Positions 1,597 through 17,160 of a DNA stretch of 64,000 bases are shown here, in pieces. Origin of the DNA: Trichosphaerium sp. ATCC 40318 (Eukaryota > Protista > Tubulinea); the NCBI GenBank assembly GCA_038496445.1, contig JALMLS010000097.1, positions 62,001 to 126,000 of the forward strand. Reading direction: 5' to 3'. The first letter of the stretch is position 1, and every line of letters starts with the position of its first letter. The notes under the pieces were generated by a model, which did no database searches, had not been told where the DNA came from, and saw only the letters and a program-made list of their open reading frames with translations. Position numbers and translations under genes: made by a program.

Positions 1597-1906
1597 GTCG
1601 TCGTTATTGGTGGGTACAGAACAGTAAAAACGCTGGCTTAAGCGAATTTTTTCAGAATAAATCTTCCTTGTTACATTTGTGCCCAATTTCTTTACTCTAC
1701 AAAAACGCCTCTTATAACGTTGTGTGCTACGCACAGAATACGGTGTAAATAGTGCTCTTCTAGCAAAAACTGACATTTTTTTTTAATTTAACAAAGGTAC
1801 ACGATTACCCGACAGGTTTTAGCGCATCATGCATGATGCAATTGGTTACCCGAAAAAAACCACACAAAATAAAACCATTTTTAGTCATAGCAAGTCACGC
1901 ACGCCA

Positions 1907-1919
1907 GTTCAGTGTACCT
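1907..1919 (+). repeat. Left target-site duplication GTTCAGTGTACCT of the non-LTR element
   Basis: Identical 13-mer at 11675-11687, immediately after the T25 tail. Confidence 0.93.
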
Positions 1920-2138
1920 GGGGGATGATGACAACTCACCTTTCCGTGGTATCCCCTAATAACAACGCTATGAGCTCGTATAACATAAATACGTTGCAAT
2001 GGATCACATTGGGACTTGGTTTCGCGGCTACTAACAAACCAGGTTATACGGAGACGCAATCGTTGGCCGAGAAGTTGTCCGCGGGACCAGGTACAGTGAT
2101 GTCCCCGCGTAAACAAAAAATTCGCTCGCAAAGAGTTG
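1920..2138 (+). ncRNA. HDV-like self-cleaving ribozyme (putative) at the retrotransposon 5' end
   Basis: P1 GGGGGAT(1920-26)/ATCCCCT(1951-57) with a first G-U pair; P3 ACC/GGT; L3 TTTCCGT; P1.1 TT/AA; P2 CAACTC(1932-37)/GAGTTG(2133-38) preceded by C-A-A-A (C2129). Starts at the first base after the TSD. Confidence 0.72.
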
Positions 2139-5100
2139 AAAAGGCTGCCAAGCTAACTAATATGGCTGAGGAGAGGTCTCAGAATACACCTCAAGGCAAA
2201 ACCGGTGGTTGGGCAGAAAGACTTAAATGGTCGCCCAGCTGGTGCCACACGGCTCAGGCTACGTGTCGTGATATAAAATACGAGCAGTATAATTCAAACT
2301 CCCATATTTTACTCTGGCTTTTATGGTTTTTAAACCTCATTGTATCAACAACAATATCAATACTAAATAAAAACAAAGTTATTTTTCTCCTAATAATTTG
2401 TATTGGTTTTTTGCGCGCGCATAAAGTTGAAATCACGTTCCTCGAACCGGTGGATATAAATTTCTCACAAAACACTGCAAATCAACATCTCCTTACACCT
2501 AACACTTATAGAGGACATCAAAACGCAATAACACAGAGCACAGAATTCCAGGTAAATCTTAATTTTTATTCAGTGATTATTACGAAATTAAAAACACAAA
2601 AACCTCTTTGTTTTTCCTGTAATCGCTCAGAATCCCATTCACAGATCAAGGATTTGCACCACAAAAGTCCATACCTCGCAAAACATCACAAAGCAACAAG
2701 CATGGCCGCTCCAAAGAACACCTACTTTCAAGACAAGAAACTCAACCGTCGCTACTTTGAAAACTTAACGAAAGAACAAGCTGAAGCAGAACTTGCACTC
2801 ATCACAAACCCTGTCCTCAAAGAATCCTACCGAAACTCTTTAACAGCCATCCTCAAGACCAAAGAACAAGAAGATGTACTGAAAAGACTCAACTCAGCAA
2901 CTGCTATAGCTCAATCCATCATACTTGAACGTAATGCAGATGGAACCTTAAAAGCAGCTATTGAAGATGAACCTGAACTCATGGACTACATGAAAGAACA
3001 AGATGCCTTTTTCGCAGAAGAAGAGGAAGAAGCAACCGACTCACGTTTCAAGATCCAATGTGTAGACCATTTCTCCAAATTAATGGTTTATTCTGGCTCC
3101 TTTGTTTGCGCTTCAATGGCTCTAGCAACAAATTCTCCTAATCCATGTGAGCTTGCATTAGCATCAATGGAAAAAGAAAGATTGGCACAAATAGGAAGTC
3201 TAGTCAAGGGCTGTTTCTTCGAATGGAACAATTGTACTTTTCTCATTTATGGAACCGACTACACCAAACTTACAGCAACGCAAACCATTGACTTGGCAAA
3301 AGAAATTCAAACGCACCTCAAGATCGCAAAAAACCCTTGTCGTATTCACCAAGTTTTCCTTCCAACCTGTGAAGACATGGCTGATACCACCTGCCAAAGG
3401 AATTTTTTTAAATTCATCTACAACTGTGTTGTTAACCGCAAATGGGTAATCCAACTACCTGAAAAATTCTTAACCACTACTATCACTAACGCTTGGCCAA
3501 CCAAATATATCCCTTTTGTCGAACATACAAGAGACTTCGAAAACAGGAACGGCAATGTCAAAGTCTTTGAAATCACGCTCCATGTCTTGGAACAAAAAAA
3601 TCATGTAATCATGGCTAACTCAAGCGGTATTAACAAGCTCAAATTGATGATTAATGGCAAAGCGACTCTCTTCCCAATCAGATGTAATGTTCCCTTTGCT
3701 CGAAAAATTTACATGGGTAAACTAAGCTCCAAACATGCAGCTCACGATGTAGCAAGAATGCTCGCATACACTGGTGTACGTTGTCCTTTTAATTATTATA
3801 TTTCCTCTTTCAAAAAACTAATACCTTTCAGATCTTTGTCCACTCCGTTGTACACGATTGTTCAGCCAATGGAGGCTCAAGAACTGATAACTACATCATT
3901 GAAACTCGCAACTCCAACCAAAAAAGTGACCTCATCAATGCATACCTCTACAAGCACTTTGTACTTGAAGTTGGAAATAGATCCACTGGCGTTTTCTTCT
4001 CGGATGAAAGAATCATCAGATAATATAACAAAGACACAAGCTGACGTCTTCATACCCAAATCCCTCTCACTAATAAATTTCCTTGTTGTTATGTCTTGTT
4101 TCTTGTTACTTTCACTGTTCATACAAGCTTTCAGTTTCACAGGTAACTACATAAGGAAAACGATAAACATAATTTACTTCTCTTTGTTGCTCTCTCGTAC
4201 TCGTCTCCAAAACAAACTCTCTCACAAACGAAACTCCAAAAGTAAAAAGCTTTGTCCTACAAAAAAACTCTCTCTATCTTCACTCTCAATTTTCTTTCTC
4301 CTTCTGTTCCTTTTACTTTCGTGTACATGTAAGTTTACTATTATAAAAAGAAAATATACCAGTACAAAGACAAAGTCTAGCAGAATTCGTAAACAAATAA
4401 ACATAATCAACCTTCTTCTCATCGTCTGTCAACCTCTTATCTACATACAAGCAAAATTTGTTAGTACACTAAAACACTTAGACACTACCTCCATAAAAAA
4501 GAAAGAAGTAAAAGTATTCAAGCACACCAATAATAAATCAATTACATTTAGCATTAACAATTCACGCATTCTAATAGATCCGACATCACCAACTAAAGAC
4601 CTTTATGCTAAAGCAATCAGTTCAAAATTGATAAGCCACAATGCAACTTTAATCCTTAAAACTAAACCATTACGAAAGAATACAATCCTAAACAGTTACA
4701 ATCTAAACAACTACAATGTATTATCAGTGATTGAACCAATTATCGGTGGTGGCAGATTCAAAGACGACATCAAAATTATTTCGTGGAATATTCGTGGTGC
4801 CTTTGAAAGAAAAGCAATGGAGATTGCTAGAACTTTGAAGAAACAAAAAGTTGACATAGCTTGTCTACAAGAGATACACCTGGACATCGAAGAAACCCAT
4901 AACCAGAAATTTAGAATGTTAATGAAAACACACTTCAAAAACTACGATTACTCATTCAACTTACCAACACTTCATGAAACAAAATCAAGATATGTCACTT
5001 ACAAAGCTAAAAAGATACGAAAAAAAGAAACTAACATATCAATCATACAGCGTAAAACCTTAGAAATAAATCCAAACCGTGCTAAACCTTTAGGAGGTTT

Positions 5101-8100
5101 ATTGACATTAACAAAAAAATCAATCTCACATAGAGTAAAACACATTAAAACTAAATACCCGTTTGTACAATCAATCATTGTAAACGACAGCAGTAAAAAA
5201 TATCCTACACTACTCAACAATATATATATAAGTGCATACCATATTAATTCAAAACTTGAACAACTAGAGATACTCATGAAGTCCATATCAAACCTTAGCA
5301 CCAAGCATAAATTTGCGAACAAAATATTCATCGGTGACTGGAATATGGCTCAAACAGTAGAAGATAGACAAGCCCTAATTGACAACAAACTAGTAAAATG
5401 TCACATATCTGAACTGAAATACCTAAAAATAATAAACACATTCAAGGAAGGTCTTGGTCTGTTCGATCCAGTATCCCGTTTACCCAAAGTAAAACGTAAA
5501 TTTACCTTTAGTCAAGTAGTAGTTAAAAAAAACCCAACTAGAAAATTTCTAAGATTAGAACGCATCGACTATCTACTCACATCTAACCTAAACAATATTA
5601 AAAAGTTAATTACACTCACTAACGAAAATTTGTCAGACCACAACCCCATCCTTTGTACGCTATCAAAATCAATTGATCACCAAGATGTTATAGAGTATAA
5701 ACCAAGATCAAATCCTAACCGACTAATCACAAGAAACATAGACTTAAAAGCAATACTTGCAACACTTGACACATCAGAAATACAAAAAGAATTTAACTCA
5801 GCAAAAGCAAGATCAGATGACATATCAGTAAGTAGCGAATACAACAGTTTTGTATACATGCTAACCAGAGAGATCCATACACATGTAAAGCAATATACAA
5901 AAAAGAGTAATAAACCAAGGAAACAAGACTTCAAAAATAATGGTGAATATGTACGTATCGATTCAATGATCAGAAAACTTAACAAATTACGTAAACTAAC
6001 TTTAGAAACCACGCTAAGAATCAGTAGAGTCAACACTGAAACTAATGAAATCAACAAAAGAATAACACGTGATGGTGACAACCCAAGAATACAGTTATTA
6101 CCCACCTTTTATACTAAACCGTTAGAAAGAGTAAATCTACGTGACACCATAGACAAGAATCTTAAAACATATAAAAAATGGCTACGTGGTTGCAAACACT
6201 CCATGGACATGTCAAGAAAAAGATATTATTGCAAAGCTATGACGGAATTAACATCAAGAGCGTTGTTTAAGAAAATACGAGACATAAAAAAATATGAAAT
6301 TAATAAAGGTAAAACTTCAGAATTTGTTCGTTACATTGAAGGTCAACTTAATGGTGTCAAAACCCTCTTCTTTAATCAAAACTCAATCCTACAAGTATTC
6401 TCAGAGAAGTGGAGTTCAATCTTTGCAAGTAAATACCCTCACCCAAACCAAAAACCAAACAAGTATCAAACAAAAATCCCTGCAGCGCTCACTCCAGCAT
6501 CTTTCAAAAAATTAAATAAGAAATACAACAACACCATATTCTACAACGATATTACAAAAAAAGAAATGCTAAATGCAATACACAAACTCAAGGCCTTCAA
6601 AGCACCAGGTAACACAAATCTAGGTATGGAAATATACAAAAATCTACCAACAGAGATCGAAGACATGCTCCTCACTTTATTTAACGATTGTAGAACCTAC
6701 AAAACAATACCAGATATATGGAAATCTAGCAATCTAATATTTCTCAGTAAAAAAGGTAACCAACATGACCCTACAAATTACAGACCCATAGCACTTCTTA
6801 ACTCAATGTATAAAATATACACACAAATCCTAAACAACAGGGTAGCAACATTTGTAGAAAAAAACAAGATAATGAGTGACTCCCAATTTGGTTTTTATCA
6901 AGGACGAAACATCAACATGGCACAAAGAACATATAGACATATCATAGAAAATGCCGAAGCAAACAATAAAGATATCTTTGTCATATATATAGATTTCTCA
7001 AAAGCTTACGACTCAGTCGAATATTGGGCTTTAGATCACGCTCTAAAACATCAAGGATTTGACAATGAGATACGTCAGATAATACTAAGTTTATTCAAAG
7101 AAATCAAAGCAGACATCATTTTACCTATGGGCAAAAGACCGATTAACATTGAAAAAGGAGTTAAACAAGGGGATGGCTTTAGTCCAATACTCTTTACACT
7201 TTTTGCTAATGTATTAATAAAAGAAATTGAATCAATGAACTGCGGATACCATATTCCTAACACCAATATAAAAATACCAATAATAGCATATGCTGACGAT
7301 ATAAAACTAATAGCAGACTCATATGAAAACCTTATGAAAATGTTCAATAAACTACTAGAATGGTGTGACTTCTACGGCATGAAAATCAATGTGAAAAAGT
7401 CAGCCTTTTCATACATTTGTAGAACAGACCCACAAGCTCTTTTCCCACCGCCTAAAGCAAAAAATAACCGAATATCCTACTTAAAACCAGAAGAGTCATA
7501 CAAAGACTTAGGTATTCTAATAAACCTGAGACTAGACGCCACAGACCAAACGTCAGAAATCAAAAGAAGGCATGCTAATGGACTATCCTTAATAAGATTT
7601 AAGGGCTTTAATGCAATCCAAAAGACTACCATAATTAACAGAGTCATTAACCCAGGAATCACTTTTGTAACTAACGCAATGTTAATAGATCCCAAGATAC
7701 TAAAAAAATGTGATGATAACGCAGCAGACTTACTAAGATCAGACGCCAAAATCCCATGGAGACTAAAACCTGAAAGAATCTTTTTGAAACATACTGGACT
7801 TGGACTCGAACCATTAACTGACCTACAAAACGCTGGTTTTATCAGTAACTTGATCTCAAACGGTATGAACTGCACCAACAAAACAACAAAACAAATCTCA
7901 AACGCTAGTATACGACTAGCTCACCAAAAGTTTAATCCAAACCATACAATATGCCAGGCCACACAAATTTGTAAAAGCCTTGGAATAAAGATCATACACA
8001 AATCGGATGTATCTGAAACAAGAACAGAACATAAAATAAATAGAATGGACATACAAACCTTCAAAAACAACTGTAACATAGTAAACTCAAAATATGTTAT

Positions 8101-8221
8101 GGCAACAGACGGATCAGTAACTTCGAAAGGTGCATATTTCTCAGTGGTACTCAACACGATACTCAAGTTCAACCGATCAGTCTTATTCGAACAAACATCT
8201 ACTAACGCAGAACTGGAAGCT
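1925..8221 (+). CDS. Retrotransposon read-through polyprotein, 5' part (leader, ORF1 N-terminus, hydrophobic linker, ubiquitin-like domain, APE, RT, RNase H N-half)
   Basis: One uninterrupted frame (ORF track 1829..8230). The first ATG inside the element is at 1925, but the real start may be 2702. The frame ends at the DNA-transposon insertion. Confidence 0.85.
2702..4023 (+). CDS. Retrotransposon ORF1 (coiled-coil + RRM-like), spliced: 2702-3775 joined to 3832-4023, 421 aa
   Basis: ATG 2702 (MAAPKNTYFQ). Intron GTACGT...CTAATACCTTTCAG at 3776-3831. The spliced frame completes an RRM-like pattern, KIYMGKL..HDVARMLAYTG|IFVHSV..DNYIIET..KSDLINAYL..TGVFFS, then TAA at 4021. Confidence 0.7.
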
Positions 8222-10197
8222 CAGGTCTAAAATTCTCGAGCTGTTTTTATGGTAGATACCATGAATTTGTGGTATAATTATACCATTGATTCCAATTTTA
8301 TACCACAAATTCCAGTATAATATACCATAAATCAAAGGATTTATACCATGAAACAGCCAAATTATACCATAAATATACAGTAGAAAGTGTGAATTTATAC
8401 CATATTTTTTCACCTGAAAAAATGCATTATATGGTATAATTCTACCATAAAACATGGTATAAAACACAGTATAATACCATAAAGTCTGGTATATTATACC
8501 TTAAAACTTGGTAGATTATACCACAAAACCAGGTGTATTATACCGTGTAAAAACTGTTCTAAAAATAAAAACACATTTATTAATACATCTTTTTTTTGTT
8601 TACATCCGTGACCTTTAGTTTGCCCATGTCCTTTTTTGCAGTGATCAAATAACCTTAAAAGAACAGATCGTACTTGCTGTAAGTGCATTGAATGGATATA
8701 GCATGAAACCTAAAAGAAGAGTTAGCGCCGGCTTGGTTTCTTGTACACAAAATAAATAGTCGTACAAAAATTGCTGTTTTGTTGTGATGGCAGCACTGAG
8801 AGTACCAAATGACCTGCACGGTGAAGCCAAACCAAGACTAAAACAAAGAAATGAAAATAGCTACCAACCTCATCGGAAACGAGTTCTAGTGGAATAGTAC
8901 CTGGTTGGGCGGCTAACACGTTTTGTTTTTTTTATATCACCTATTAAGCCTGTAAAACCTATGGCAAACAGCTTTAAAACAACTACTTTCTAGCATACCT
9001 TGTGTTGTGTGGGCGATAAACTGGTCAAGACTTAGTTTTATGCCCTGGCTTAGCCAATTAGTTTACATTATCACTCGTAAGGTCAACGCATGGGTGCAGA
9101 GCCTAAATGCTATCTGTTCCGGCAAATGCGGGCGTTTAGTAGGAAAAAAACCAAAAAAATCCAAAAAAATCCAAAAAAAACCAAAAAACTCGAAAAATGG
9201 GTAGGCTCTGAAACAACTTTGCCTTATAACACTAATCGTGCGGTTTAACACACATTGGGGCATATATCAAGAATGTCAAAAAAAAATAAATAATTTTGCT
9301 CCTGATTTGGTAAATGAGGCTGTATGGCGTTGATTGAGTGTAAAAATGCCCATGGAGGGGAGAAAAAAATGAGAGCCGGAGAAAAAAACCTCCAATTGGA
9401 GGTTTTTTGCGAATGGGCATTTTTCAAGCGCTACACGCGGTTTTGGTGTGTTTACCACTGTAGCGTTCTAACATGGGGTATACGGAGTGGTTTTTTCCTC
9501 AAATACCATCAATCGGAGAAAATTGTCCAATTTATCCCTAAAACGCCCGTAATTGGGGCGCGTTACCAGATTTCTCTCTTAAAACTGTTTTTCACACATT
9601 TATATGCCAATTATGTTCAATAACGGCTACTGTCAAAGCATTGTGTGGTATGGCGTTTGCATAGGTCCATATGCTATTAAATCAAGTGCAGACTAAGTGA
9701 GCTTTGACTAACTTATACTTATACGGTATAATACCACAGTATAATACCACATTTTATGGTATAATTATATGGTATAATGCACGGTATACAATACTTTAAA
9801 ATGCAGTATAATACCATGGTATAATACTGTGTTTTATGGTATAATTATATGGTATAATGCATGGTATAATATACTTTAAAATGCAGTATAATACCATGGT
9901 ATAGTACCATGTTTTATGGTATAATTATATGGTATAATGCATGGTATAATATACTGTAAAATGTGGTATAATACCATGGTATAGTACCATGTTTTATGGT
10001 ATAATTATATTCTATAAATCGAGATATGGTATAAACATGGTATAATGGCTGTTATACCATTTGTCCAAAAAACATGGTATTATACCATGTTTTACAGTAT
10101 AATTATATGGTATAATTATGGATTATACTGAGCTTGTACCATAAAAGGTGATTATACCATAAAATATGGTATTATACCATGATAATTTTCAGACCTG
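8222..10197. mobile_element. Non-autonomous TIR DNA transposon (1976 bp), CMC/EnSpm-like architecture
   Basis: Termini CAGGTCTAAAATT and AATTTTCAGACCTG (inverted, one indel). 2-bp TSD CT (8220-21 and 10198-99). Dense subterminal ATACCAT/ATGGTAT repeats in both orientations. No transposase ORF. Excision restores the RNase H frame. The superfamily call is tentative. Confidence 0.85.
9752..10010. repeat. 80-bp tandem repeat (about 3.2 copies) in the right subterminal region of the DNA transposon
   Basis: TTTTATGGTATAATTATAT recurs at 9752, 9832, 9912 and 9992. Confidence 0.9.
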
Positions 10198-10199
10198 CT

Positions 10200-11564
10200 A
10201 TTGAACTAGCTCTAAAAATAGCACCGCTAGAAGTTGACATAATGATTTTAGTAGATTCCACATCAGCTATTAATGGCATTGAGAACTGGAAAGACAAACC
10301 AATCAATGTCCAAAGAAAAGTAGATCATGCACACACATTAAATAGAATACATCAACAGCTCGAAAACAGGTATGGTACAACAACCTTTGAGTGGATACCA
10401 AGCCACACAAAAACTGATAAACAAAAACGTAACAGACCCAACATTGCAGAAAGAATTGCAACCATAGAAAAGAAATATACAAAGAAAACAGCATCTCTTT
10501 TCATTGATCTAAACGATATCGCTGATAGAACGGCAGGGATATCTAATGTACCAATATCACCATCAACTAAAATACCCATTGGCAGTGAAGATTGGGTTAT
10601 CACCCAAGCGACAGGTACAACACAAGGTAATATATTTAGGAAGCTCAAATCCAAACAACATGATAAACACGTGTTAAATTTACAACACAATGCTTCAGAC
10701 TATGGTAGAACAAGAGAAAACTTAATACTACCGCTATCATCATATTCTGCAAACTCTCACCTTGACATTCCGATAAAATTATGGCTCCTTAAGGTACGTA
10801 CAAATACATTACCTCTAAATGAATTCCAACATAAACGAAGTAAGACTAAAGGTCCCATCCAAGCTTACCAACTAAGTAACCAAATAAAGTACCCTAATGG
10901 TTACTGTACACTATGCAAAAATAGAAATATACAATGTACAGAAACCTTTGAACATTTTTGTACATGTGACAAAATAGAAACAATAAACGTGAAGTACCAC
11001 ACAAATAGGATCATAAAAGAATTCTTGAACAAAAAAACACCTTCAACTGATGCAATAGCAACATACAACAAACATGCAGGCGGTAACAATCTTTTCTGCA
11101 AATCAAAATGGCCCACAAAAAGTAAGATACCACCCTCGAACGATCAAATAGAATTAGCAAAACTTGGCAATACACAAATAAATAAAAACATGAAAGACTT
11201 CAAAGTTTCACCTTGGTACCTCACAAAAAACACCAACAAAACGACCCATTTCAGAGGATCCCAAGGATACGTTACAACTGAATTCATACAAGAATTAAAA
11301 CAAAAAACAGGGAAAAATAACACTAACCTCATTAATGCACTTGCAAGACGCTTAAACAACATGTATATCACAACCCTTTATGCCAAATATCGGACTAGAT
11401 GTCACAAAACGCATGCAATTAAAAAGACTATCGGACAACACACGCCAATGCATTATGTAAGGTGGCAAGCTAAACAACTGAAAATGAAACAGTTCTTTCC
11501 CATTACCAACGCTATACCACTATTCCCAAACATAGTTAACAATACAAATAGGATAATTACGTAA
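10200..11564 (+). CDS. Retrotransposon polyprotein, 3' part (RNase H C-half + zinc-finger region)
   Basis: IELALKIAP..ILVDSTSAI..FEWIPSH..NDIADRTA; LWLLKVRTNTLP..CTLC..ETFEHFCTC. In frame with the 5' part once the insertion is removed. Confidence 0.9.
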   Translation: MELALKIAPLEVDIMILVDSTSAINGIENWKDKPINVQRKVDHAHTLNRIHQQLENRYGTTTFEWIPSHTKTDKQKRNRPNIAERIATIEKKYTKKTASLFIDLNDIADRTAGISNVPISPSTKIPIGSEDWVITQATGTTQGNIFRKLKSKQHDKHVLNLQHNASDYGRTRENLILPLSSYSANSHLDIPIKLWLLKVRTNTLPLNEFQHKRSKTKGPIQAYQLSNQIKYPNGYCTLCKNRNIQCTETFEHFCTCDKIETINVKYHTNRIIKEFLNKKTPSTDAIATYNKHAGGNNLFCKSKWPTKSKIPPSNDQIELAKLGNTQINKNMKDFKVSPWYLTKNTNKTTHFRGSQGYVTTEFIQELKQKTGKNNTNLINALARRLNNMYITTLYAKYRTRCHKTHAIKKTIGQHTPMHYVRWQAKQLKMKQFFPITNAIPLFPNIVNNTNRIIT

Positions 11565-11575
11565 CATTTAATAAC

Positions 11576-11631
11576 ACAGCCAACCCAACGCTTCGGCGTG
11601 GCCCTATGGTGGCTAGAGGTGGGTTGGCTGT
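11576..11631 (+). other. Structured 3' UTR element of the retrotransposon (multibranch stem with a cUUCGg tetraloop)
   Basis: ACAGCCAACCCA (11576-87) pairs perfectly with TGGGTTGGCTGT (11620-31), enclosing ACGC-TTCG-GCGT and a second short hairpin. Confidence 0.75.
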
Positions 11632-11649
11632 ATAAAGATCGTTATTGAC

Positions 11650-11674
11650 TTTTTTTTTTTTTTTTTTTTTTTTT
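11650..11674 (+). repeat. Poly(T)25 3' tail of the retrotransposon
   Basis: T run between the 3' UTR and the right TSD, on the coding strand. Confidence 0.9.
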
Positions 11675-11687
11675 GTTCAGTGTACCT
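11675..11687 (+). repeat. Right target-site duplication GTTCAGTGTACCT
   Basis: Matches 1907-1919 exactly. Confidence 0.93.
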
Positions 11688-11783
11688 TCACAAACAGACT
11701 GAATTAGTCGTACGTGAAAGCCACTGAAACGCTACCCTGTACCGTGGTATGGTTTAAGAGTTTAGCTAACAAAAGTGAACAAC

Positions 11784-14700
11784 ATGTCGGAGTCACGGTC
11801 ATCTAAGAAGCATCACAAGCGTAAACGCTCCAAAGCTACAACAAAACATCCCGACCTTGAAGGAGAAACATTGTCTGTCGGCTCAAGTGGCAAGAAGGAG
11901 AAGTTTGCAGAGAGTAAATCAAACGGAGAAGCCAAATCAAAGAATGGAAGTAATCACGACAGCAGAGATCTAGGGAGCTCCATGAGTGAAAACATTACTA
12001 CGTCACAAGACAGAAGCAGCAAGAAAAGCGACAAAGCAAGTAAAAAAAGCTCAAAGCAAAACAGCTCTAAAAGTTCCCAAAACCTGGACAAGAAAGCCGA
12101 AAAAGAAGAGTCACGTAAAGCTAAAAAGAAACAAAGCCAAATGACGCTTGTAACATCAGGAGACACTACAATTCGCTTCGAAGGCGCTACCAAAGGAGTA
12201 CGTTACCAAATTATGGTTTCCGAATATCGTCAACATGTTTGTAATACAACGAATACTAATAATAATCCATTAGGACGCAAAAGTATTGCGTGTGCCTCAA
12301 GTGGAGGGATTCTTGTACAAATACACCAACCTTGCGAAAGGTACGTTCAAAATTAAGGTGTTTTTTGTTATTTTAATTTTTGACCTTGTGTACGTCGCCT
12401 GTAACATTATACTTACGTTGAGTTTGCTTTTAGGATGGCGTAAACGTTATTTTATCTTGGAGAGTGGTATTTTAATTTACTACAGAAAAAAGAAGATGAG
12501 CAATCCTAGAGATACCATTAATCTCGTATCCTTTTTTTTTTTTTTTTTTGCCAAGCTTTTTTATGAATTTATTGCAGTTGTTCGATCTTTTTTGAAAATT
12601 CTCCTTAACATTGTAAAGGCGCGAGCTGTAATAGTTCTATCTAAGAGCAGCAAGTGCGAATTTACTATTAATACAGATAATGCAGTGTTTCACCTTCGTG
12701 CAAAGGTAAAAAAAACCGGGAATTCGTCAATACTTTGACAAAAGAATCAAAAAACTTTTTTTGTTTATCAGAAAACGTGTCGACAAAAAACGAGCAAAAA
12801 ACGAACACAAACGCGATGTTTTTATGCGTCATTTTGTTTCTTTGCTCAAAACTTTATTGAGAGTAAGGTATTAATCTTCTTTTATTAGACTAGAGCTATT
12901 AAAGACAAGTGGGTTGACGCTATGACGAGATCGAAGAGTGTTATTTCTGATCTAACATCAAACGATCGTATGAGTTCATTGAGAAGCCCTATTACTGAAG
13001 GTACGTGTTTCTTTTACACGTTTTTTTTTTTTCTCGTGTTTTAAGGTGTTTGGTTTTATTTCGTGTTTTAAGGTGTTTCTTTTGCGCTTTTGTTAATGAT
13101 TATACCTATAGGAGATGCTTTAGCTTCTCTTAACGAGAAGATAGCTGAATCTAAGGATCTTGAAAAGAGCTTGGCTAAATTGTTGAAAGATTTAAATAAG
13201 CAGACAAATGAAGAAGGAAGTAGTAAGAAAAAGGGTGATAAGAAGAAGAAGAATAATGGTGATATTACTACAGTAGATGGGCATAAGTTTGTTGAAAAAG
13301 CGGAGGAATACCTCGGCGCAGCCCGCGGTTTATTGAGTGCTGCAGATGATGCATCAGCTATTTTACAAAACCATACGCAAGTATTACGACAAGTAGATCG
13401 CTTGCAGGTTGAAAAAGCCATTCTTATTGCAAAATTACGAAAGATTAAAAAGAGCGATTATGTACGTGTCTTAGCTTACTATAGGGCAATAATATCATTC
13501 TCATATACTAATATATACTTAGTATGGTAGAGAAAAAAGTAAAGGAAGGAATACAATCGATCCTGACTCGAATTCTGACGATATGTTTGTAAGCTTGTAT
13601 TTTTTTTCTTTAATATTTCACGTTTCAATGCTTATTTTGTTTTTTTCAAGAAAATGGACGAGGAAGAAGAAGAGGATGATGAAGAAGATGAAAGTATGTC
13701 TGATCCAATACAACAATATGGATCACCTCTCGACGGCAGCGATAGCGATGAATTCTTTGATGCTGAAGAGCCTTCCATGTCGTTTTATGATGCAGTTGAC
13801 GATTCTGTTCTTTTATATCGTCGTGGTTCTCAGGGATCTTTTGCAAGAGAAGTCTTGCCTAAAGAAGATTTACGTAGACAAGGTGGACCTACCATTGTCC
13901 GTTCTGTTTCTGAATCAAACTCACTTGTTGAGCGAGCTCACTCTAGGCGTATGTCTGGTACGTATTTAATAGATTGTTTTATGGGTTGTATAGCAAGAAA
14001 CATGACTTGGGTACTTATGTCGTTTTTGTGTAGAGAGTAGACAACGCAATAAGGCAATGAACTCTCCTGCACGTCATAGATCAGTCAGTGATGGTACTGG
14101 CGATGATATAGAGAGTGTTCACCATGAGTCTATGAAAACGTTTGAAGACACTATGAAAGAAGCTGGCCAGGTACTATTTAAACAAAAAAAAGCGAAACAA
14201 AGAAAACTTGATAGCTGTAGCAGCGGAAAATTTGTAACAATGTTTTCTAGTTCAATGAATTTTGGGATTTTGCTAACAAAGTTGTAGATTAAAAGGAGAA
14301 CCCAGCTCCCATACGTTGGTAAAATACAAAACAAGCCAAGTCTTCTTAAGATTCTAAAGGATGCTGTACGTTCTCTTTCGCACACGTAGTTGCTCGTCTC
14401 TACGCATCTATATTTTGGTAATTTTTGACTTTGTTCATGTTAGATTGGCAAAGATTTATCTCGTATAACTATCCCAGTACACTTTTCCGAGCCACTGTCT
14501 ATGTTACAGCGTCTTACGGAAGATGTTGAATATTCAGATCTACTCGATAAAGCAGCGGCCGAGGATGACCCAGCTAAGCGTCTCCTCTGGCTAGCAACCT
14601 ATGCTATATCTCCTCACGCAGGTAACAACAATTTCTCATCGGCCTTGTTTTATCACTTACCTCGGTTTAGCTACCCTTGACAGGACAAATAAGCCATTTA

Positions 14701-16061
14701 ATCCACTTCTTGGAGAAACATATGAAAACGTTCGCGAAGACAAGGTATGTTGTTTACTCGTTTTTATGCGCGTAGTCGAAGCAACTGAATTTTGTCCTCA
14801 ATTTTCTGACATTTTTTTAGGGATATCGTCTACTCACTGAACAAGTCAGTCATCACCCTCCAGAGAGCGCCTTTTATTGTGAATCCAAAGATTGGTATAT
14901 ATACGGTAATGCTTGGGTTAAGAATAAGTTCTGGGGTAAATCATTGGAGCTACTGCCTATTGGTGAAATGTGCGTTTAAAATTTTTTTGTTTTATTTTAT
15001 CATTTTGCGTGTTGTATGTTTTGATACTCTTGTTGACGCCCTTTGTAGTCATATTAAGATTCCAAAATATGATGATCATGTGACATTTAGTAAAGTGACA
15101 TGTTGTATCCATAATGTATTGATTGGTACCAAGTACATTGCGCACTACGGTAGAGTAAGTATCTTTTTTGCCCTTTTCGTTTAAGTTCGTATTTTTTTGG
15201 ATTCTTGGCTAACGTTTGGATAGATGAACATTAAAAACCACACCACTGGACACTATTGTAAGCTAGAGTTTGCCAAACCGTCACTATGGGGAGGCACACA
15301 ACACGCTGTAAGTGATTTTTTAATAATTTTTTTTGCCTTGTTTTTTTTTCTTAGTTTTGTATTTTTAGGTGAAAGGTAGCGTCTATGATAAGGATGATAA
15401 TATGCTATACGTTATAGAAGGAAAGTTCTCAGACAAAGTATCTGCTAAAGAAGTGCTACCAGATGGCACTGAAACGGAGCCAAAGACACTTTGGGAGGTG
15501 CGGAAAAACTAAAATGCCCGAGAGCTTTTGGATTGAGAAAAAAATCTTTAATTTGACGTCTAACCACTCTCTAATATTTTTCTATTTTCTAATATACTTC
15601 AGGTACGACCTCGACCTTCTAATGCGAAGAAGCAGTACAATTTTACATCGGTATGTCATCATCACTCGAGACAAAAAACAAAAAAATGAAAAAAACAGTT
15701 TAAAGAATTCTTGTTTTTTTCCTAACTGTTGATCTAGTTCTCTATTGAACTCAATGAGTTGACACCAGGACTTGAAGATAAGTTACCTGCAACAGATACA
15801 AGATTAAGACCAGATCAAAGAGCCATGGAAAACGGTGATATAACAGTTGCAAGTAAAGAAAAAGAGAGACTAGAAAACCTTCAAAGAGCAAGAAGAAAAC
15901 TCCGTGAAGCAAATAAAGAAGAGTGGGAACCAAGATGGTTTGTTCCAAGTGAGAATGGTCAATCTTGGGAGTACAGAGGAGGATACTGGGAATCAAGAGC
16001 ATCAGGTAAATGGGAGGGTGTTATGGAGACTATTTTTGTAGATAAAGATCAAGAAGATTGA
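11784..16061 (+). CDS. Oxysterol-binding protein family member with PH domain and FFAT motif, multi-exon
   Basis: PH domain (EGFLYKYTNLAKG|WRKRYFILESGILIYY), FFAT motif EFFDAEE, ORD motifs IGKDLSRITIPVHFSEPLSMLQR, KPFNPLLGETYE, EQVSHHPP and TDTRLRPDQRAMENGD. Confidence 0.93.
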
Positions 16062-16329
16062 TTGTTGTAATATGTTTTAAATAACCCAAGTAATAACTGC
16101 TACCCACCTCACTAATAACATAAATTTTTTTTCTCTGAATATTTGCCCTCTCCTTTTTAGTAAAAGCATCAATACTGGTTGTCAAATATATTTGATTTAT
16201 AATCCGAACCCTGGGGTTACAACATCTCTTACAATGTGAAGGTTTTTGCCTAGCAAATACGTTGAAAAACTAAGTCTGGACCAAGGTTATTTGAATCGCA
16301 TCAATTGCGATTAAATCGTTAAAATACTT

Positions 16330-17160
16330 ATGGCAGCAATACCTAGGCATGTTGAAAGAAGTGTTCGTCCTTTTTTTTGGATTGTAGCTACTTCAAATGG
16401 CACAACAGCCAACCAAGAGTTCAGAAATGGCGTAGAAATGATTAGTAAAGCTAAACAGAGTTGTTTAACGTTACATGTTCAAAAAGCATCAGGAAAGCGT
16501 TTTCCTTCTCTATTATCGCTTTCTATGGACTATTTGATAGTTAATAACATTGATACAAAAGATGTACACTTGCCACAATCACTGGAAGCTAAACTGAAGA
16601 ACAAATCGAGAGTGTTAACTTTTTTTTCGAAAGAAAAACTTGTTTCATTCATTTCTTTGCATCAAAAAAAATCACGTGGAAATTGGTCATTGTCATGTGA
16701 TCAAAATTGTCTAATTAAATGGGGTGCTGAATTAAGAGGTATTGCAAACGAAATATATAACAGAAAGAACGATACAATAATTTTTTGTCATGTTACATCC
16801 AATCTAAAAGTTTCACACTTGGAGAACAAAACTTCAATTGATAAGATTGGTTTCAATTTAGGATTTCTTGTATTTGACTCATATGTCAAGGATCTTAGAG
16901 CTATGAATATAGCTTTCTGGGGATTATATCAAGTGGGATTTCCATGGATATATAATGGACACTATGAAGAAGATAAACGTGCAACATTAGTTTATTGGCA
17001 GCAAACAATAGAGTCCGGTGCTCTTCTTTTTCCAGAGCCATACCCTCATGATTTTGCTCTTATTGTTGGTGTTCCTGGTGATGGTGGATTTGGGTCAATG
17101 TGGATGGGTCTTGATCAAGAAAAGACAGAGCAGCTACGTTCCAGAGACTTATTTTTTTAA
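16330..17160 (+). CDS. Hypothetical protein, 276 aa, intronless
   Basis: Long ATG-initiated ORF with protein-like composition; no family recognised. Confidence 0.6.
   Translation: MAAIPRHVERSVRPFFWIVATSNGTTANQEFRNGVEMISKAKQSCLTLHVQKASGKRFPSLLSLSMDYLIVNNIDTKDVHLPQSLEAKLKNKSRVLTFFSKEKLVSFISLHQKKSRGNWSLSCDQNCLIKWGAELRGIANEIYNRKNDTIIFCHVTSNLKVSHLENKTSIDKIGFNLGFLVFDSYVKDLRAMNIAFWGLYQVGFPWIYNGHYEEDKRATLVYWQQTIESGALLFPEPYPHDFALIVGVPGDGGFGSMWMGLDQEKTEQLRSRDLFF

Follow-up and report, generated by a model that had tools for sequence, protein, structure and literature searches.

Why does the polyprotein of a retrotransposon carry a ubiquitin-like segment with a di-glycine end directly ahead of its endonuclease? 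This question is raised by one copy of a long interspersed nuclear element (LINE) in a stretch of 64,000 nucleotides from Trichosphaerium sp. ATCC 40318 (contig JALMLS010000097.1, positions 62,001 to 126,000), which we call the window and whose own numbering is used for all coordinates below. The element is an APE-type LINE, a non-LTR (long terminal repeat) retrotransposon, with a single polyprotein that comprises in order a gag-like part, a linker, a ubiquitin-like (Ubl) domain, the APE endonuclease, the reverse transcriptase (RT), an RNase H and a Cys/His region. The features of an APE-type LINE are all present, with APE and RT in one open reading frame (ORF), a target-site duplication (TSD) and a simple 3' tail, which is a run of T and not of A. 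One open frame on the forward strand (1829-8230, 2133 codons) spans the Ubl, APE and RT domains. An earlier note on this DNA had described a Ubl domain with a di-glycine end abutting APE, and had suggested that host deubiquitinases (DUBs) use it to process the polyprotein.

A ubiquitin-like segment ahead of the endonuclease

Retranslation of the site gives ...VKVFKHTNNKSITFSINNSRILIDPTSPTKDLYAKAISSKLISHNATLILKTKPLRKNTILNSYNLNNYNVLSVIEPIIGG-GRFKDDIKIISWNIRG..., in which VKVFKHTNNKSITFSINNSRILIDPTSPTKDLYAKAISSKLISHNATLILKTKPLRKNTILNSYNLNNYNVLSVIEPIIGG is followed by GRFKDD and then by the first APE strand, IKIISWNIRG. This is as the earlier note had read it, with the di-glycine at 4745-4750 encoded by ggt ggt. 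The reading frame is unbroken across this junction, the stretch from the GG to APE contains no Met, and the residue after the GG is not a proline (it is Gly here, and Ser in the relative P0017 described below).

As a reference we used the genome's own ubiquitin (L013), which has two differences from the textbook sequence. The ungapped match to ubiquitin 43-76 noticed before is borne out with 10 identities in 34 residues, and hhalign also pairs DPTSPTKDLYAKAI with EPSDTIDNVKQKI, the parallel that had been seen further upstream. Four polyproteins of this family, from the window and from other contigs of the same genome of ~70 Mb (these contigs are called C80, C30, C265 and C361), contain 7,729 segments of 34 residues, and 10 or more identities to ubiquitin 43-76 are found only at the window site (10) and at its homologue on C80 (11). 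The next-best score is 8, reached by three segments, among them the corresponding site in the C30 polyprotein, which likewise ends in GG. When host ubiquitin is compared with the whole 2133-amino acid (aa) polyprotein by the Smith-Waterman method, the best match is again aa 941-974 against ubiquitin 43-76, with GG on GG, and the best match in the C80 polyprotein is 481-541 against ubiquitin 15-76.

Comparisons of profiles extend this likeness over most of the domain. Specifically, hhalign aligns the window and C80 segments with host ubiquitin over 69 columns at 29% identity (P 0.0021, GG aligned on GG), and with a profile of 21 host Ubls at P 5e-4. When the complete polyproteins are scanned blind with a hidden Markov model of host Ubls, the best domain, a weak one, falls on the GG site in both the window and C80. 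We also used an alignment of six GG-terminated segments of the family as a profile (A6). Every one of the 60 best matches of this profile among all PDB sequences is ubiquitin or a variant derived from it (E 0.003-0.05, as compared to single-domain E values of 0.2-1.5 for the window lineage alone), and profile columns 16-79 correspond to ubiquitin 13-76. By hhalign the profile matches ubiquitin at P 2e-4. The likeness to ubiquitin thus grows as divergent members are added to the profile, which speaks for homology. The GG of the segment falls on G75-G76 in every one of the ubiquitin comparisons. In a search with protein-language-model features the segment falls among clusters of ubiquitin (0.94; 179 of 256 features in common), and the ten best family-bearing matches of this search are all of the ubiquitin clan.

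The earlier note had also expected a beta-grasp fold, and the predicted model points towards one. The AlphaFold2 model of the window and C80 segment has a strand-strand-helix-strand-strand order (E16-20, E23-27, H33-42, E51-56 and E73-81), with one further strand at the N-terminus. A VIA-align comparison of this model with 48,161 PDB representatives returned Ubl domains for almost all of its best 50 matches (Z 4.1-5.3), with 55-69 residues aligned over model residues 12-85 and with neighbours that include UBLCP1, Get5, Dsk2, USP7, ISG15, FAT10, SUMO and ubiquitin variants. What falls short is the confidence of the model, which is moderate (pLDDT 64, pTM 0.53), as well as the Foldseek search against PDB, where nothing was found below E 0.49 even though ubiquitin entries recur often in its list of weak matches. 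A Z of 4-5 is moreover in the range that VIA terms a 'common arrangement', and the model of the C30/C361 segment is unusable (pLDDT 39). We therefore regard the window-lineage segment as fitting a beta-grasp with moderate confidence.

Besides these structural points, several sequence results count against a ubiquitin ancestry. The Pfam ubiquitin model has no match at E <=1 by hmmscan, either on 4400-4753 or on the whole ORF, and the 150 PF00240 matches of the genome that were listed, out of 156, do not include the GG site (the other six are weaker). The C30/C361 segment taken alone reaches only P 0.13-0.33 in hhalign and has no usable match in the language-model feature search. These results would be expected if the segment were unrelated to ubiquitin, being instead an AT-rich spacer, rich in Asn, Ile and Lys, that resembles ubiquitin by chance and is followed by a GGG that acts as a flexible hinge before the endonuclease. 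The Smith-Waterman score of 42 speaks on both sides of this explanation, since 17 of 300 shuffles of the whole 2133-aa protein attain it, as against only 9 of 5000 when the 81-aa segment is shuffled with its composition preserved (p ~0.002). A chance likeness is also at odds with a profile match that improves with divergent members and ends at G76, with the P0017 segment, which alone aligns to ubiquitin 35-76 at P 0.0099, and with the tails RLRGG, KLKGG and RIRGG of sister elements. We consider it quite improbable. The segment is instead very probably a Ubl domain that descends from ubiquitin, and the earlier proposal of such a domain at this place is supported by the ubiquitin match, by the profiles and by the conservation of the GG. 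Taken singly these lines of evidence are modest, and they all agree.

The genome holds 156 PF00240 matches, which is unusually many. Many of these are diverged single-unit ORFs (75-115 bits), some of which end in stop codons or altered tails and not in GG.

The di-glycine junction in five lineages

A six-frame search of the genome recovered the GG segment in three lineages, namely A (window and C80), B (C30 and C265) and C (C361). In lineage A the two copies share 75% identity over the Ubl and APE query and 67% in the Ubl segment. In lineages B and C the ORFs are uninterrupted (2663, 2612 and 2389 codons) and cross the GG junction. They encode in order a gag-like region, a linker, the GG segment, APE (PF03372, E 2.7e-9), the RT, an RNase H (PF00075, E 3e-10) and a Cys/His region. 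The C30 and C265 copies are 99.96-100% identical over 8 kb and have unrelated flanks, and the C30 copy has its own TSD, which together indicate that lineage B transposed very recently. Thus, as judged from its sequences, this sister of the window lineage is recently active. A further LINE family in the genome (L007-L010, 27% APE identity) has a separate ORF1 and ORF2 and lacks the GG segment. As a separate observation, the gag-like region of the C30 element (G000:C30 ~8733-16721) contains a 153-bp tandem duplication (51 aa, LWSNTEPFNV...IILAP twice) that is not present in C265.

Outside of this genome, searches seeded on the Ubl and APE yielded no useful relatives. The Ubl and APE region of the full ORF gave nothing at E 1e-3 or better against 5.8 billion proteins, and an exhaustive HMMER search of the Ubl and APE region against 1.84 billion representatives gave only two weak matches to APE alone. 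Distant RT matches that lack the motif were all that a further search, with a profile (A5), returned. The earlier note had suggested looking among RT-containing proteins for a Ubl-APE-RT architecture, and a search seeded with the RT did yield relatives: among 155 LINE proteins the GG motif is correctly placed in two, P0017 and P0006. The first (1828 aa, from an ENA assembly) has only ~100 residues upstream of the Ubl and reads ...QTIDINMRIRGG / SKTRIIHQNVNS, running directly into APE. The second (2589 aa, from an 8.9-kb contig of a public sequencing run) reads ...KTITIHTTLKGG / GRSN.

Conservation of the GG, on which the earlier note had staked its proposal, is seen in five independent lineages, with [I/L]-x-G-G at the junction. 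With a slash for the junction, the tails are IIGG/G in the window and C80, RLRGG/G in C30 and C265, KLKGG/G in C361, TLKGG/G in P0006 and RIRGG/S in P0017, so that the following residue is Gly in four lineages and Ser in one. The longer tails in the genome are VIEPIIGG then G (window, C80), IIRRLRGG then G (C30, C265) and NFKLKGG then GG (C361). In all lineages of the genome the GG is followed by a small residue and has a hydrophobic one at -3, and it lies 8-16 residues before the first APE strand. Gly makes up 2-3% of the four polyproteins, and each of them has a single GGG, always at the junction. The codons of the junction glycines vary synonymously between copies (GGT, GGA, GGC).

The body of the domain is far less constant than its tail. 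MAFFT alone is unable to align the Ubl body of the window lineage with that of C30/C361, and an ungapped comparison of the two anchored on the GG is not significant (p 0.18). An apparent 31% identity across lineages in the global polyprotein alignment was discarded as a gap artefact. As the bodies cannot be aligned directly, their homology across lineages rests on position, on the tail motif and on the joint profile. Note that lineage A retains a ubiquitin-like body and lineages B and C retain a ubiquitin-like tail, a division that would be expected of descendants of a single captured ubiquitin.

Between the window and C80 copies the ratio of non-synonymous to synonymous substitution rates (dN/dS) is 0.22 in the Ubl, 0.25 in the linker, 0.07 in APE and 0.11 in the gag-like core. 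This comparison of coding sequences indicates that the Ubl segment is under purifying selection. Identity between the same two copies falls from 94% in the first ~1 kb (1920-2945) to 77-78% afterwards (3146-8220), and dS is 0.37 in the gag-like core versus >1.2 downstream. Such a shift along the element suggests a mosaic that may have arisen by recombination or template switching between element lineages.

Proposed cleavage after the di-glycine and its alternatives

The best explanation of the whole is that a ubiquitin-derived module is cut after its GG by host Ubl proteases, and to this reading of the sequences we assign a probability of roughly 0.55. Specifically, a captured ubiquitin gene would have diverged into a module that ends in Gly-Gly nine residues ahead of the endonuclease. 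The host ubiquitin and Ubl C-terminal proteases that process polyubiquitin and ubiquitin-ribosomal-protein precursors would then cut after the GG, and this cut would separate a gag-linker-Ubl product from the APE-RT-RNase H enzyme. The host does carry polyubiquitin arrays (head-to-tail units ...LRLRGGMQIF...) and many USP loci. The released pol protein would begin with Gly, or with Ser in P0017, both of which are stabilising N-terminal residues under the classical N-degron rules, and a stabilising N-terminus after the cut would explain why the residue following the GG is conserved. For cleavage at the GG taken by itself, the occurrence, exact position and enzyme of which we infer from these patterns, the odds appear somewhat better than even. 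N-myristoylation of an exposed Gly was also considered and was rejected, as an Arg or Lys next to that Gly is at odds with the usual motif. No NPGP or 2A motif, D(V/I)ExNPGP, is present in any of the four polyproteins.

The strongest, if indirect, support for cleavage comes from the P0006 sequence. In this relative a Ulp1-type protease lies directly after the GG and is followed by APE, RT and RNase H. The protease matches Peptidase_C48 (E 2e-6, above the Pfam cut-off) and RickCE-like (E 6e-5), as well as yeast Ulp1 (E 2.2e-6) and an Orientia deubiquitinase (E 5e-3). Relative to yeast Ulp1 the halves of the protease (residues 745-1060, locus L057) are swapped, with query 48-103 corresponding to Ulp1 126-188 and query 158-238 to Ulp1 32-121, an arrangement that stems from a circular permutation or else from two partial copies in tandem. 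The presence of a protease at this junction points to proteolysis there as the logic of the family. A complex prediction for the Ubl-like segment and the protease region of P0006 scored 0.02 and is no evidence either way. By Pfam, no protease domain, C48 included, is present in the window, C30 or C361 polyproteins, and the seven C48 matches of the genome are on other contigs (C7, C11, C23 and C84; 3-4 loci). We give about an even chance to the wider proposition that this LINE family domesticated a captured ubiquitin as a polyprotein cleavage signal, with most members using host proteases and at least one relative using a Ulp1-like protease of its own in a Ubl/ULP cassette.

Several observations weigh against cleavage in the window copy. 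The tail of the window and C80 polyproteins is E-P-I-I-G-G, with Ile in place of Leu73 of ubiquitin and without Arg72 and Arg74, so that these two lack the tail type (Leu73, Arg74) of the L-R-L-R-G-G recognised by ubiquitin-specific proteases. Canonical tails of this type are seen in the sister lineages, as RLRGG (C30/C265), KLKGG (C361) and RIRGG (P0017). The loss of the arginines indicates that the enzyme might not be ubiquitin-specific, or that cutting may be inefficient in the window lineage. Only one contig from sequencing runs touches the region (167 nt, 3881-4047, from one run), and the RNase H of the window copy is split by a nested insertion. The unusual tail is also what would be expected if the Ubl were real and yet never cut, serving as an aid to folding or solubility or as a docking module for the proteasome, shuttle or other ubiquitin-binding partners, with the GG a relic hinge. 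Many integral Ubls are indeed never cleaved, and most of the structural neighbours (UBLCP1, Dsk2, USP7, TBK1) are of that kind. However, integral Ubls usually lose their GG, whereas here the GG, the hydrophobic residue at -3 and the small next residue persist in five lineages despite bodies that have diverged beyond recognition, and one relative has a Ulp1-like protease at this very place. An uncut Ubl thus seems unlikely, though it deserves serious weight.

Cleavage would in addition expose a free GG, and the gag-linker-Ubl product could then be conjugated as a modifier, for example with the pol protein, host targets or the product itself as acceptor. The architecture is what speaks for this, as the gag-side product would end after the cut in a Ubl fold with a free Gly-Gly. 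On the other hand, Pfam scans of the elements found no E1- or E2-like gene, and an N-terminal extension of ~680 aa on a modifier would be unprecedented. In P0017 only ~100 residues precede the Ubl. We hold such conjugation to be very improbable, and cleavage that simply releases the enzyme remains the reading that we prefer.

Layout of the element and comparison with known systems

The coordinates of the LINE and of its parts are collected in Table 1.

Table 1. Features of the LINE copy in the window and of the sequence nested within it.
Feature	Position	Strand	Evidence or remark
Left TSD, GTTCAGTGTACCT	1907..1919	+	13-mer repeated at 11675-11687; C80 homology begins at 1920
Whole LINE copy: 5' untranslated region (UTR), single long ORF, 3' UTR, T-run tail	1920..11674	+	TSD-flanked; blastn against the C80 copy gives 1920-11677
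Polyprotein start (ATG 2702) and gag-like N-terminal region	2702..4060 (end approximate)	+	Without a Pfam family
Hydrophobic low-complexity linker, coding	4061..4528 (boundaries approximate)	+	dN/dS 0.25; C80 indels all in frame
Ubl (predicted beta-grasp) domain, ~74 aa, I-I-G-G end	4529..4750	+	Profile, model and sequence comparisons; dN/dS 0.22
Di-glycine, ggt ggt; predicted scissile bond after 4750	4745..4750	+	Kept in all lineages, with synonymous codon differences
Third Gly (ggc, 4751-4753; predicted new N-terminus) and 9-aa spacer GRFKDDIKI	4751..4777	+
APE endonuclease domain	4778..5587	+	Pfam PF03372 (Exo_endo_phos), aa 984-1253, E 7e-4
RT domain	6749..7465	+	Pfam PF00078 (RVT_1), aa 1641-1879, E 5e-35
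RNase H domain, first part (..ATDGS..NAELEA), truncated by insertion	8090..8221	+	C80 comparison
Nested 1,978-bp insertion, not LINE sequence	8222..10199	.	Terminal inverted repeats CAGGTCT..AGACCTG
RNase H remainder (..DSTS..PSHT) and C-terminal Cys/His region (CTLCKN..HFCTC)	10200..11564	+
25-nt T-run, sense-strand 3' end	11650..11674	+
Right TSD, 13 bp	11675..11687	+	Matches 1907-1919

The polyprotein most likely starts at ATG 2702, as its Met lines up with the initial Met of the C30 and C361 polyproteins (MAAPKN, MSANNN and MSSNTN in the window, C30 and C361, respectively) and is followed in all three by a shared N[L/M]T[K/R]E[E/Q]A motif. The linker contains three strongly hydrophobic stretches, for example LSLINFLVVMSCFLLLSLF, and yet it is under purifying selection, as seen from the dN/dS and the in-frame indels listed in Table 1. 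The PF03372 match of the window polyprotein lies below the Pfam cut-off, and that of the C30 relative lies above it. The C80 copy reads without interruption through the RNase H (NAELEAIELALK), and PF00075 matches are present in the C30 and C361 polyproteins. The 3' ends differ by lineage, with a T-run in the window versus (AACT)n-like repeats in C30 before its TSD TAATTCTCTTATTCTT (G000:C30 ~8625-8660).

The sequence nested in the RNase H has many GGTATAAT subterminal repeats, with dozens of GGTATAAT/ATTATACC copies in all, and is bounded by the terminal inverted repeats CAGGTCTAAAATT ... AATTTTCAGACCTG and a duplication of 2-3 bp (CT or GCT). It also contains 80-bp tandem units and looks like a non-autonomous DNA transposon. 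An Rfam search of 1700-12000 found no known ribozyme at E <=0.1, and gave only chance microRNA-like matches inside this nested repeat (9726-9984), which correspond to its hairpins. Upstream of the LINE insertion, an exon-like ORF on the reverse strand (203-547) has a clear sequence of the seryl-tRNA synthetase type, so that a host gene is close by.

Natural ubiquitin-fusion precursors, among them polyubiquitin, the eL40 and eS31 fusions, FUBI-eS30 and Sde2, have a GG-ended fold that is removed by cellular Ubl proteases. The LINE resembles these in having a GG-ended Ubl in frame with a downstream protein, and its host has genes of this sort. It differs in that its Ubl is internal to a retrotransposon polyprotein and preceded by ~680 residues, is highly diverged and has an IIGG tail in the window lineage. 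A second parallel is provided by cytopathic pestiviruses, in which host ubiquitin is inserted upstream of NS3 and cellular ubiquitin hydrolases release the replication enzyme. Here too a selfish RNA-based element has captured a ubiquitin coding sequence, with the release step in the LINE being a predicted one. The pestivirus insertions are recent, sporadic and near-identical to host ubiquitin, whereas the LINE module is old, diverged, under purifying selection and family-wide.

Among LINEs themselves, separation of gag and enzyme within a single ORF is known for few cases, namely 2A skipping and the Ulp1-like protease proposed for NeSL. Peptides of the 2A type, which act by 'ribosome skipping', are present in the APE-type LINEs L1Tc and ingi and in families of multicellular organisms (PMC3708506). 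The window element is like these in that two products would come from one LINE ORF without an element-encoded protease. This likeness is functional only, as 2A is a co-translational recoding at NPG/P and the polyproteins described here are without NPGP. The RLE-type LINEs NeSL and Utopia-1_TSP have a Ulp1-like cysteine protease at their N-terminus, as described in a paper that does not mention ubiquitin or SUMO (PMC4640811). The relative P0006 is similar to these in carrying a C48/CE-clan protease fold inside a non-LTR retrotransposon protein. Unlike NeSL and Utopia, the window element has the presumed substrate (Ubl-GG) and no protease, and P0006 has both, with the halves of its protease swapped.

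In the full text of about 8.4 million papers and preprints we found no published description of a Ubl domain in a LINE, with subscription literature and Repbase reports lying outside of this search. The element is a LINE with a new accessory module, which is real and conserved, and with a new processing logic, in which the proteolytic role of the module is probable. If this role is true, it would add a further route to gag-like and pol products besides separate ORFs and 2A skipping. It would also mean that a retrotransposon outsources the maturation of its polyprotein to host DUBs, a solution otherwise known to date from sporadic pestivirus recombinants and not from a stable lineage of mobile elements. 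P0006 suggests that substrate and protease can also travel together in one element. As a highly diverged natural ubiquitin, the module offers a probe of what DUBs need in a substrate (EPIIGG versus RLRGG). For the organism, the output of this LINE would depend on host DUB activity and would be tied to the host machinery of ubiquitin processing.

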